Origin: Macrostomum lignano
Taxonomy: Eukaryota
DNA: 64,000 nucleotides
Direction: 5' to 3'
Assembly (NCBI GenBank): GCA_002269645.1
Contig: NIVC01001937.1
Coordinates: 1-64,000, forward strand
Within the stretch, counting starts at the first letter, position 1, and each line of letters begins with the position of its first letter. This document shows, one piece after another, positions 1-4,716 of the stretch. Under the pieces are notes generated by a model. The model saw nothing but the letters and a program-made list of their open reading frames with translations, had not been told where the DNA came from and did not search any database. Made by a program: the position numbers and the translations under genes.

Positions 1-2480
1 CGGGACATCTCGATGAGCAGAAATGCCGCCGCTGCCATCGTGACAATGATCTGCGGGATGCGCCATAATAACTAACTAACTAGCTAACTAACTAACTAAC
101 TAACTAACTAACTAACTAACTAACTAACTAACTAACTAACTAACTAACTAACTACTAACTAACTAACTAACTAACTAACTAACTAACTAACTAACTAACT
201 AACTAACTAACTAATAACTAACTAACTAACTAACTAACTAACTAACTAACTAACTAACTAACTAACTAACTAACTAAACTAACTAACTAACTAACTAACT
301 AACTAACTAACTAACTAACTAACTAACTAACTAACTAACTAACTAACTAACTAACTAACTAACTAACTAACTTACGTCATCAATGGAGATATTCGGTACA
401 AAGCGGCCCACAACGGTAGTAAATTCGAAGTCTACCGTCACGAAGTGGATCAGCTTCTCGATCAGCTGGAATGCGGTCATGAATTCGCTGTCCGAGCCCG
501 GCAGCGGAGACGATTCCTGCGGGCGGGGAGTGAGTCAGCGGTTGAGCCTGTTTTCCTTCTTGAAGCTTACTGCTGCCTCTTGAGATACCTGCTATATGCT
601 GGCAGTGATGCTCAACCCAGACAAAACTTACTATTCACTCCAAACAGCACCCACTATTCACTCAAAACAGCACCCACTATTCACTCAAAACAGCACCCAC
701 TATTCACTCAAAACAGCACCCACTATTCACTCAAAACAGCACCCACTATTCACTCCAAACAGCACCCACTATTCACTCCAAACAGCACCCAATATTCACT
801 CCAAACAGCACCCAATATTCACTCCAAACAGCACCCAATATTCACTCCAAACAGCACCCACTATTCACTCAAAACAGCACCCAATATTCACTCCAAACAG
901 CACCCACTATTCACTCAAAACAGCACCCACTATTCACTCCAAACAGCACACACTATTCACTCCAAACAGCACCCACTATTCACTCCAAACAGCACCCACT
1001 ATTCACTCAAAACAGCACCCACTGTTCACTCCAAACAGCACCCACTATTCACTCAAAACAGCACCCACTATTCACTCCAAACAGCACCCACTATTCACTC
1101 AAAACAGCACCCACTATTCGCTCCAAACAGCACCCACTATTCACTCCAAACAGCACCCAATATTCACTCAAAACAGCACCCAATATTCACTCCAAACAGC
1201 ACCCACTATTCACTTCAAAAAGCACCCATTATTCATTATTGTTTGCTGAAAAATTTTCACAAAAATATTTGGCCTACCCTGGCGTATTTCAGGCACTGCT
1301 TCTTCACGAAAGCATTCGGCTTCACCGCTCGCAGGCGTTTTTATCCCAGGCGTCGCGAACTTTCGAACAATCGAATATGCCTAATATGAGGTTGGTCAGC
1401 TTCATGTACCACGGCACCTCGTCATTAAACCTTTTGCACAACTGGTTGCCTACCTTGTGGCACTTGTTCACCATGTCAAACAGAATAGTTTTGCACATTT
1501 TCTTTATAGTTTTTCGAAATTTAGCCGAAGCGCCTTTTCTGGCTTTGGCTAGCGCTACGGTGAATTTGTTGTACTGCTCTCTGGCCAGCTTGACCATGGC
1601 TTTGCCCCGGTTTATCCGCCTGTTCATGTCCATGATGGCCTGCGCCTCCTCCTGCTCTTCCGCCTTCTCCGATTCTTCCAGCACAGCATCAGCTTGCTGG
1701 GACGCCTGCTGCAGCTGCGGCTCCATCTGGTCCGGGTCGCTCGGCTTGCCAACTTTATCGTAGACGTTCTTTTCCATCTCTTCCTTCTTAATCATGAGAT
1801 CGTCGAACATGGTCTGCGTACCGCTGGTGTACTGAAAGTGCAGCGCGGTGGAGCTGGAGTTCAGCCGCTTGAACAGGAAGCTCAGCAGCAGAGTGGTGGT
1901 CATGTACTCGTGCGCGATGTTCACGAACGGTTTCAGACTGAGCTTCAGGCCGGCCTCGACCAGGTCGCTGCCCGACAGCATGAAGCACTGCATGGACAGC
2001 TGAGTCTGGTTCAGATTGTGCATCAGCGTCTGGAACGGCCCGCTGAACACAGCCTCGACAATCTTGCTGGTCACGTAGCCGCCGCCGAACTCGAGGAACA
2101 GGCTGGGAATGAAGAGGAGCGTCACGAGCAGGAAGCGCTTGGATACAACCACAGGGAACACGAAGGCGACTAGCGTGGCCACTATGAGCAGCCGAGAGTA
2201 GGTGCTGCTGCCCAGTGATGTTTTGTAATAAAATCTAGCGAAGTTCGTCACAAACACGTAGAATATGACGATGCCCCAGATGACGCGAATGCAGAATTGC
2301 AGCAGGCTGATGATGGCCCCAGCCTCCGGGGAGAAGCACAGCGGAAAGAATTGCGGCGAGCAGGCCACGGTTGTGCGCTCCTCGAAGCTCAAAGGCTCGT
2401 TGTAGCCCAGCCTGGCGTGGGCCACATCCGCTGTGCACTCGCCCACCTTGGGGCACTGCTCAAATATCGGGCGGACCATC
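1..2480 (-). CDS. DC-STAMP/DCST-family (Sneaky/SPE-42-like) half of a spliced multi-pass membrane protein gene; exon 2480-~1278, exon 516-376, exon 71-<1
   Basis: Translation shows TM helices followed by LLFIPSLFLEFG-x14-GP-x6-N-x9-C, the spacing of the DCST/DC-STAMP N-terminal signature as recalled from the family, then a Cys-containing helical ectodomain. Exon 516-376 (CTGAC branch + CAG acceptor, GTAAG donor) and exon 71-1 splice in phase 0 to give ...FVPNISIDD|LLWRIPQIIVTMAAAAFLLIEM, a TM segment. An in-frame TGA at 1322-1324 is probably a 1-nt indel. Confidence 0.75.
70..372. repeat. (AACT)n microsatellite forming almost the whole of intron 375-72
   Basis: About 75 AACT units directly visible, flanked by a minus-strand GTAAG donor and TAG acceptor. 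Confidence 0.95.
630..1225. repeat. 23-nt minisatellite (CACTATTCACTCAAAACAGCACC), intronic
   Basis: About 25 tandem units with minor variants. It generates spurious ORFs 445..1389 and 596..1249. Confidence 0.95.
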
Positions 2481-2572
2481 CTGCCAAGGGAGTGTGCAGT
2501 GAGAATTGGGTTTTGATGCGGTGCAGCCCTCACACTGGCACCCAGTCTCTTGCCTGGGTGTCTCTTGTAAGT

Positions 2573-2702
2573 GCCCACTGTCTGCCCCGCAGCACCCACT
2601 GTCTGCCCTGCAGTGCCCACTGTCTGCCCTGCAGCACCCACTGTCTGCCCTGCAGCACCCACTGTCTGCCCTGCAGCACCCACTGTCTGCCCTGCAGCAC
2701 CA
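2573..2702. repeat. 21-nt minisatellite (CCCACTGTCTGCCCTGCAGCA), intronic
   Basis: About 6 units inside intron 2759-2481. Confidence 0.9.
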
Positions 2703-2759
2703 ACAGTCTCCAGCTTCAGTCTGGGGACTCTGGCAGCTGGCTATCAACAGCCAACCCAC

Positions 2760-4716
2760 CTGGTGGGCACGGAGACCAGCGGCACGGTGGTGTCAATCTG
2801 CCGGTCGGTCACCGCGGAGCCGCCAGTCAGGCCGCTCGCTGAGGCGACGTCGCCAGCCAGCCGGATGGCCTTGGGGTCGAGGCCGGCCAAGCCGTCCTGA
2901 GCTGTGTAGGCTCGCTGCAGGTAGAAGGCGGCCACAATGCTGAGTATGGCTATCATGCTTAGCGGCAGGAGCTCGTCTTGATTAGCCAGGTATCTGGATG
3001 CAATCGACGGAGCGCAGGAGTTTTTGTTCGGCCGATGCGTGCTGGGATCGTAGCAGCTGAGCGGCGGGTGGCTGCGGAACCTCGGCGGCAGCTGGCCGGG
3101 CCGCTCGGCCAGGAACTCGGCGTAGATGGCCAGTTCGGCCGAGAACTCCATCCAGTCGTCGGCGGAGCGCACGCCGCAGCACTTCTCGTTGAAGTGCACC
3201 TTGTCCATGAAGCTGGGATAGAATGGCTTGTGAGAAGATCCCGAGTGTTTGGCCTTGTTATCGTAGAATATCTTCAAGTTTAGCTGGGTGGTATTGACCA
3301 GCCCGGCAGACTGCAGCTCCAGCAGCTTCAGCTTGGCCAGCTGGGCTATGAATGGCGCCGGCAGCAGCATCTGCGCGCGCGGGTCGCGGGGATAAAGGGA
3401 AAATAATGGGGAAATTTGCAATTTTACCGGCCTTGCTGCCCATTGCCTGATGCCTCACCTGCAGGATGTGGAACTGCCCATGCCCATTGCCTGATGCCTC
3501 ACCTGCAGGATGTGGAACTGCCCATTGCCTGTGGCCTCACCTGCAGGATGTGGAACTGCCCATGCCCATTGCCTGATGCCTCACCTGCTGGGTGTGGAAC
3601 TGCCCATGCCCATTGCCTGATGCCTCACCTGCAGGATGTGGAACTGCCCATGCCTATTGCCTGATACCTCACCTGCAGGATGTGGAACTGCCCATGCCTA
3701 TTGCCTGATACCTCACCTGCTGGATGTGGAACTGCCCATTGCCTGATGCCTCACCTGCAGGATGTGGAACTGCCCATTGCCTGATGCCTCACCTGCAGGA
3801 TGTGGAACTGCCCATTGCCTGATGCCTCACCTGCAGGATGTGGAACTGCCCATTGCCTGATGCCTCACCTGCAGGATGTGGAACTGCCCATGCCCATTGC
3901 CTGATGCCTCACCTGCTGGATGTGGAAATGCCTATGCCCATTTCCTGATGCCTCACCTGCAGGATGTGGAACTGCCCATTGCCTGATGCCTCACCTGCAG
4001 GATGTGGAACTGCCCATTGCCTGATGCCTCACCTGCAGGATGTGGAACTGCCCATTGCCTGATGCCTCACCTGCAGGATGTGGAACTGCCCATTGCCTGA
4101 TGCCTCACCTGCAGGATGTGGAACTGCCCATTGCCTGATGCCTCACCTGCAGGATGTGGAACAGGCTGACAAGCAGGCTGACAAAGTTGGTAAACTTGGC
4201 CAGTTTGGACATCCGAAGCATCCGCAGTCGCGGCACCTTCCCCGTGACAGCGTAGGCCGTCAGCAGCGTCAGCAGCAGCGTCAGAGCCAGCTGGCAGCTG
4301 AACATCACCCGGCCAGTCCTGAAGCTGAACACGTAGCCCTGCCAATCATTCAGCATGCTGTCCAGCTGGGCGGTCTCCTTCGGCGTGTACGCCCACGGGT
4401 GCATTCTGGCTCGCTTAGCAGCAGACGGCATGTTCAGATAGACAGCCAGGGCAATCAGGAGACCCAGCTTCATCAGCAGCAAAGTTAGGCCAACCAGAAA
4501 GAAATTGTGCCTGCTCACCAGGCCCATTGTGTAGAGGGGAAACGGGCCAAATACATAGGAGGGAATTTTGTACAGAAAGCTCATGTTGGCGTCCAGCAGG
4601 TTGCCGATAAATCCGCTCGGCCTCACAATGGTGGCGCTCTGGTCAGCGCGCCGCTGCCGCTGCTCCTCCCAGTTTTTTAGTCGGTCGGCTAGCGCTTCCT
4701 CGGATTGCAGGTTCAT
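2760..4716 (-). CDS. Tetraspanin-like N-terminal half of the same gene; exons 4716-4147 and 3370-2760
   Basis: Three hydrophobic helices in exon 1 to the start of exon 2, then an EC2 loop MDKVHFNEKCCGVRSADDW...PPLSC...NSC, then TM4 LLPLSMIAILSIVAAFYL. Canonical phase-0 intron 4146-3371 (CAG|GTGAGG ... GCAG|ATG). Phase-2 intron 2759-2481 joins in frame to the DC-STAMP exon. Confidence 0.8.
3436..4161. repeat. 38/44-nt minisatellite built from the exon-1 end plus the 5' splice site
   Basis: About 18 units, minus strand GTGAGGCATCAGGCAATGGGCAGTTCCACATCCTGCAG. The last 15 nt equal the exon end. Confidence 0.95.

Follow-up and report, generated by a model that had tools for sequence, protein, structure and literature searches.

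A predicted fusion of a divergent tetraspanin with a DC-STAMP/DCST protein in the flatworm Macrostomum lignano

DCST1/2 and the tetraspanins CD9 and CD81 are among the few proteins with a known essential role in gamete fusion; their mode of action is unclear, and in mammals they are found on opposite gametes. Here we describe, in the flatworm Macrostomum lignano, a gene (family Mlig000509) in which modules of both protein families are predicted to be joined by splicing into one reading frame. The gene was analyzed in a 64,000-nucleotide (nt) stretch of contig NIVC01001937.1 (positions 1 to 64,000 of the forward strand; hereafter the window). The window holds the first five exons, and its left edge cuts the gene in exon 5. 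All gene coordinates are window positions on the minus strand.

The tetraspanins of mammalian fertilisation lie on the egg, in trans to DCST1/2 of the sperm (bioRxiv 10.64898/2026.05.13.724128), and a partnership of CD9/CD81 with DCST1/2 in cis is therefore not known from vertebrates. DCST1/DCST2 of vertebrates, Sneaky of Drosophila and SPE-42/SPE-49 of Caenorhabditis elegans are characterized by the DC_STAMP domain (PF07782), which is also found in a near-identical copy of the M. lignano gene. As in this family, a large cysteine-bearing loop lies ahead of the fourth helix of the M. lignano DCST part, and the length of that part is similar (~800 amino acids (aa) versus 726 aa in fish DCST2). 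The C-terminal cysteine-rich, RING-like motif can be aligned with that of fish DCST2, and the three N-terminal helices are accompanied by a spaced motif of the family, the comparison here being with fish DCST2. Unlike fish DCST2, the M. lignano protein has a 394-residue N-terminal extension that is tetraspanin-like. It also differs from its DCST relatives in a strongly diverged N-terminal half and in the long acidic insert, coiled-coil-like in character, that its loop contains.

The extension resembles tetraspanins such as CD9 and CD81 in its four helices, in a small loop followed by a large one, and in the CCG, DW, PxSC and fourth cysteine of the large loop. In contrast to tetraspanins, which end in a short tail, the C-terminus runs on for ~850 residues. 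The N-terminal tail and the small extracellular loop (EC1) are also longer, and the first two transmembrane helices (TM1 and TM2) fall outside the profile match.

The junction and the two modules

Exon 2 ends CCCACCAG/CCC ACC AG and is followed by the donor GTGGGT. Its final AG and the first G of exon 3 form AGG, which encodes Arg394, and the codons ATG GTC follow directly, so that the frame is kept in the translation. If intron 2 is retained, the frame ends after five codons at a TGA (2746-2744; ...VSVPTRWVGC*). A sequence-only reading of the window had placed a splice from 2760 to 2480, with a phase-2 arginine rebuilt across it and motifs of both families on either side, and all of these statements are correct on the minus strand. 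The same in-frame junction is present in two public M. lignano annotations, one of which is based on RNA-seq data.

When 1.84 billion representative proteins were scanned in full with HMMER, the exon 3 product retrieved only GenBank PAA57369.1 ("hypothetical protein BOX15_Mlig000509g1", M. lignano, 1240 aa; hereafter P0001) and thus only its M. lignano cluster. P0001 is 99% identical to the query, residues 1-385 of which correspond to its residues 395-779. The cluster contains four further copies, including UniProt A0A1I8GX48 (P0005). Its four full-length members (P0001, P0002 and P0004 from the GenBank annotation Mlig_3_7, and P0005 from UniProt) all read ...VSVPTR/MVRPIFE... across the junction, and the N-terminus encoded by exon 1 is the same in P0002, P0004 and P0005. 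At the four public loci compared (L001 to L004, assembly GCA_002269645.1) the fusion is the sole gene model annotated. The remaining ~380 residues, with the DC_STAMP domain and the RING-like tail, are visible only in these other copies.

The product of exon 3 alone has no Pfam match. In P0001, residues 945-1107 match DC_STAMP with 73.1 bits (E = 3.5e-20, cut-off 25); this domain lies outside the window, and P0001 is 99% identical over the part held in common. The sole relative retrieved outside M. lignano was fish DCST2 (P0006). Based on BLASTP, residues 895-1205 of P0001 align with residues 349-637 of the fish protein (E = 2e-13). The alignment includes the C-terminal cysteine motif, in which CLCCGD...CLEC...CRPC...CLLC of P0001, likewise beyond the window, is matched by CLACG...C...C...CMQC...CAVC. 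Within exon 3, the motif P-x6-G-x14-GP-x6-N-x9-C occupies model residues 519-559 (2107-1985, minus strand), and its spacing is identical at residues 81-121 of fish DCST2. The best local alignment between the N-terminal halves of the two proteins is collinear but weak (z = 2.7; 6 of 300 shuffles reach the score). It places fish residue 12 opposite model residue 441, so the DCST unit would begin inside exon 3, ~45 residues past the first codon. These comparisons assign the downstream module to the DC-STAMP/DCST family. The sequence-only reading had recognized a DC-STAMP-type region here; its family assignment agrees with the domain in the near-identical copies, the RING-like tail and the motif shared with fish DCST2, but the Pfam domain itself is beyond the window.

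The protein encoded by exons 1 and 2 matches the Pfam Tetraspanin profile (PF00335) over residues 160-341 with 33.3 bits (E = 4.9e-8 against the whole Pfam library), just above the curated cut-off of 32.1 bits. The match spans TM3, the large extracellular loop (EC2) and TM4, which correspond to profile positions 103-222 of 225, and leaves TM1 and TM2 unmatched. Four helices are apparent as hydropathy peaks at residues 74-92, 137-159, 175-199 and 323-341. Between helices 3 and 4, the ~120-aa EC2 reads, in translation, EKCCGVRSADDW ... PPLSC ... NSC. It carries in order CCG (3181-3173), DW, PPLSC (the PxSC motif) and a further, fourth cysteine. Despite the borderline profile score, we accept the N-terminal module, by homology and layout, as a divergent tetraspanin, which is what the sequence-only reading had proposed.

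Both halves appear to be under constraint. The locus L001 is a more diverged homeolog of the window (~96% DNA identity, ~5% divergence at synonymous sites). It keeps the junction and the exon ends although its intron 2 is 708 nt long and has GTGCGT, a donor that the undisputed intron 7 uses as well. When L001 is compared with L002, 4 of the changes in the tetraspanin exons are non-synonymous and 16 synonymous (omega 0.08, binomial P = 3e-7); for the DCST exons the counts are 4 and 23 (omega 0.05). Thus, both halves encode protein under purifying selection.

The window and contig L002 share 99.76% DNA identity over 10 kb and differ by 3 mismatches and 21 single-base indels, mostly in homopolymer runs. 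They look like redundant contigs of one locus with long-read errors. Exon 3 of the window contains a frameshift, where GG at 1326-1325 replaces the GGG of L002, L003 and L004 and leads to a stop at 1324-1322. Since the differences between the window and L002 are mostly single-base indels in homopolymers, the deletion is most likely a long-read consensus error, and given this indel pattern we reject reading the frameshift as the mark of a pseudogene. The five loci seem to correspond to g1 to g5, with one gene each; the assignment of g2 to the window is an assumption. P0004 (g3, 1196 aa) has a different C-terminus without the RING-like cysteine motif. At L003 18192-18544, tblastn returned two overlapping pieces, and a frameshift in that contig is likely behind the P0004 C-terminus.

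Word-index protein searches with exon 3 or the whole of P0001 retrieved nothing beyond the M. lignano cluster, and the C-terminal 461 aa of P0001 retrieved one fish DCST2 (E = 5.6e-3). A metagenome scan gave no relatives. In the Protein Data Bank (PDB), phmmer found no match to exon 3, to the whole of P0001 or to fish DCST2, and no DCST structure was found in the copy searched. A literature search returned no paper that joins Macrostomum with DC-STAMP and none on a tetraspanin-DC-STAMP fusion, and the name "Mlig000509" gave no hit in papers or in the PMC5816591 supplements. The claim that no example had been described thus holds for the searchable literature, but databases already list the model, unstudied, as a "hypothetical protein", and the protein collection searched records both Pfam families for it.

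One transcript or two

We estimate a probability of about 0.65 that a real and substantial fused tetraspanin-DCST mRNA is made; its splicing is supported indirectly, by annotated models. The Mlig_3_7 annotation was derived from RNA-seq data and uses TBONE to split transcripts where spliced-leader (SL) or poly(A) signals occur (PMC5730564). The Mlig000509 models were left uncut at the junction in this annotation, and the UniProt model P0005, which was deposited separately, has the same junction. AATAAA, ATTAAA, AGTAAA and TATAAA are absent from intron 2 in every copy compared, whereas an AATAAA lies 166-175 nt past the true stop codon and serves as a positive control for the scan. The intron-2 acceptor, TGGCAG, departs from the SL-acceptor motif [T/C]TNCAG, a motif found at only ~44% of M. 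lignano SL sites (PMC8629364). The SL of this species ends in ATG (PMC8629364); at 2480 an SL-derived ATG would lie out of frame and give a 7-codon upstream open reading frame overlapping the start codon. The window does not contain the M. lignano SL sequence.

Several points weigh against a fused transcript or against its proposed composition. Exon 3 opens with ATG as its first complete codon, and homology to DCST begins ~45 residues past it, as for a separate downstream gene. The intron-2 donor differs from the species consensus GT[G/A]AG at position +4. M. lignano has numerous operons, whose intercistronic spacers are short and filled with repeats (PMC8629364); here the distance from the read-through stop to the ATG is 265 nt, of which 136 are repeat, which fits the picture of an operon spacer. 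The architecture was not found outside M. lignano in searches that are blind to distant relatives. The region of P0001 that corresponds to the tetraspanin match scores 27.9 bits for PF00335 against the cut-off of 32.1, which makes the match borderline.

Because an ATG follows the acceptor and because operons and SL trans-splicing are common in the species, two mRNAs have to be considered. The tetraspanin would end at the TGA inside intron 2, and a DCST mRNA, trans-spliced to the SL at 2480, would start at the ATG at 2479; read-through would yield the cis-spliced fusion as a minor isoform, chosen by annotation pipelines because it gives the longest open reading frame. The start of the DCST unit within exon 3 agrees with such a pair, as does the spacer, given that operons contain 15% of M. 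lignano genes and have ~100-bp spacers after repeat removal and that SL trans-splicing needs only an acceptor without an upstream donor (PMC8629364). Yet a usable upstream donor is present, and it joins the two halves in frame. This, together with the spacers that lack a poly(A) signal in any copy, an acceptor that departs from the SL motif, the out-of-frame SL ATG and the uncut models, leaves the operon pair as a rather unlikely alternative to the fused mRNA. The fifth member of the cluster, the partial model P0003 (g4), begins RMVRPIFE at a contig edge, with its coding sequence starting 2 nt upstream of the exon-3 acceptor (L004 363, equal to window 2482). This start is compatible with read overhang from cis-spliced reads or with a real 5' end; given the contig edge and indel errors, it was set aside as ambiguous evidence for or against trans-splicing.

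It is improbable that the N-terminal module is a four-helix stretch, unrelated to tetraspanins, that extends a flatworm DCST protein and has CCG and a few cysteines by chance. The narrow and partial profile match, its fall below the cut-off in P0001 and the unusually long tail and EC1 would suit such an extension; moreover, phmmer against the PDB matched no tetraspanin with the exon 1 and 2 half, and a single-sequence AlphaFold2 model of residues 1-394 was too poor for a fold search (mean predicted local distance difference test score, pLDDT, 46.6). Set against this are the E-value over the whole Pfam library, the correct order of CCG, DW, PxSC and the fourth cysteine within the 120-aa loop that separates helices 3 and 4, and the tetraspanin-like spacing of the four helices. 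Still less credence is due to the idea that errors of assembly or annotation created a join that is never spliced in vivo, or that the window copy is a dead pseudogene. The frameshift at 1326-1325 and the redundant, error-bearing contigs of the locus speak for it, but 21 single-base indels, the frameshift among them, separate the window from an otherwise identical contig, the canonical in-frame junction is kept in the homeolog, and purifying selection is strong on both halves.

The Mlig000509 junction resembles conjoined genes and M. lignano SL-operon pairs in that the old upstream stop lies just inside the intron and the downstream ATG right past the acceptor, and the spacer is short and filled with repeats like the intercistronic regions of this species. 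Unlike such pairs, it is joined in frame, is the sole annotated model at four loci and is kept in a diverged homeolog. With no poly(A) signal in the spacer, it therefore looks like a fixed fusion rather than occasional read-through.

Gene layout, repeats and neighbouring features

Coordinates are collected in Table 1. Each 38-nt unit of the intron 1 array repeats the final 16 nt of exon 1 together with the GTGAGG donor, so that the array offers ~18 potential donors; use of a later one would bring in an in-frame TGA. The homeolog L001 has only 2 copies of this unit. The 21-nt repeat of intron 2 is present in many more copies in L001 (11306-12013) than in the window, and both lengths of intron 2, 279 and 708 nt, are multiples of 3.

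Past the left edge of the window, the downstream neighbour is a convergent MTHFR gene in 4 of 4 loci (L001 23113-28153, L002 18465-22209). Several kb upstream of the Mlig000509 gene lies a 295-aa gene without a Pfam match. An Rfam scan of the window found nothing.

Table 1 Features of the Mlig000509 gene and of the rest of the window
Feature	Position	Strand	Description
Exon 1	4716-4147	minus	190 codons from ATG 4716-4714; 73-aa N-terminal tail, TM1 (residues 74-92), EC1 (~44 aa), TM2 (137-159), first part of TM3; ends CTGCAG, donor GTGAGG
Intron 1	4146-3371	minus	GTGAGG...GCAG; nearly all 38-nt tandem array
Intron 1 array	3436-4162		38-nt unit, 18 copies
Exon 2	3370-2760	minus	611 nt; end of TM3, EC2, TM4 (2974-2918), 52-aa low-complexity linker ending CCCACCAG
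Intron 2	2759-2481	minus	279 nt, GTGGGT...TTGGCAG, GT..AG, phase 2
Intron 2 array	2574-2709		21-nt unit, 6.5 copies
Exon 3	2480-1278	minus	G completes Arg394; ATG 2479-2477; matches P0001 residues 395-779 at 99%; ~45-aa tail, three DCST N-terminal helices (residues 449-528), DCST motif, acidic coiled-coil-like stretch, six-cysteine cluster
Intron 3	1277-517	minus	GTAGGC...CCGCAG
Intron 3 array	630-1235		23-nt tandem unit, 26 copies
Exon 4	516-376	minus	47 codons, ESSPLPG...ISIDD
Intron 4	375-51	minus	GTAAGT...CCGCAG
Intron 4 array	69-372		(TAAC)76
Exon 5, start	50-1	minus	begins IIVTMAAAAFLLIEMS; gene leaves the window here
Tandem array	4970-5443		18-nt unit, 25 copies, ~250 nt upstream of the start codon
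Microsatellite	7925-8724		(ACAG) x201, very long
Microsatellite	15836-16954		(GATT) x280, very long
Microsatellite	19518-20722		(AG) x607, very long
LINE-like element	29531-33518	plus	endonuclease, reverse transcriptase, RNase H
Reverse transcriptase fragment	33922-34899	minus	
Part of an Argonaute/Piwi gene	47235-48758	minus	508-aa open reading frame with ArgoL1, PAZ and Piwi (Pfam E = 2e-31 and 4e-35)
Ty3/gypsy-like pol	56930-58603	minus	open reading frame with reverse transcriptase, RNase H and integrase zinc domain

Possible origin and role

If the fused mRNA is real, a phase-2 GT-AG intron would join a divergent four-helix tetraspanin (residues 1-341) to a complete DCST-type multi-pass protein (residues ~430-1240) through a linker of ~105 residues, presumably cytosolic. 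The DCST part would comprise an N-terminal block of three helices, a large cysteine-bearing loop, the DC_STAMP domain and the C-terminal RING-like cysteine motif. Four helices ahead of the linker would put it in the cytosol, which would fit a DCST protein whose N-terminus and RING-like tail are both cytosolic. The argument of the sequence-only reading that an even number of helices suits both modules is thus plausible. In the resulting single membrane protein, each DCST subunit would carry its own tetraspanin, linked 1:1 and in cis.

The old stop just inside intron 2 and the DCST ATG just past the acceptor suggest an origin from two adjacent genes on the same strand, possibly operon partners. 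The former stop of the tetraspanin would be the one five codons inside intron 2, the DCST gene would have kept its own ATG right past the acceptor, and a donor just before the former stop may have captured the acceptor at the 5' end of the downstream gene.

By analogy with DCST1/2, Sneaky and SPE-42/49, a role in gamete interaction would be most likely. To say that the protein hard-wires two fusion partners is to go further than the evidence allows. Only tentatively do we propose a constitutive single-chain tetraspanin-DCST protein that arose in the Macrostomum lineage via a captured, formerly SL, acceptor, is expressed in the germline and is needed for fertilisation.

If the two families are covalently joined in nature, this would hint at a direct functional link between them. 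If the single-chain reading is true, the fusion would, as a Rosetta stone, predict that the DCST proteins of other animals work with a tetraspanin in cis, in the same membrane. It would also exemplify how an operon-type pair can become one gene when a trans-splice acceptor is turned into a cis-splice acceptor. If instead two mRNAs are made, the locus would be a tetraspanin-DCST operon, which would still suggest co-regulation. The host is a hermaphroditic flatworm in which RNA interference, in situ hybridisation and transgenesis are routine, which makes the idea of a link between tetraspanins and DCST proteins testable.

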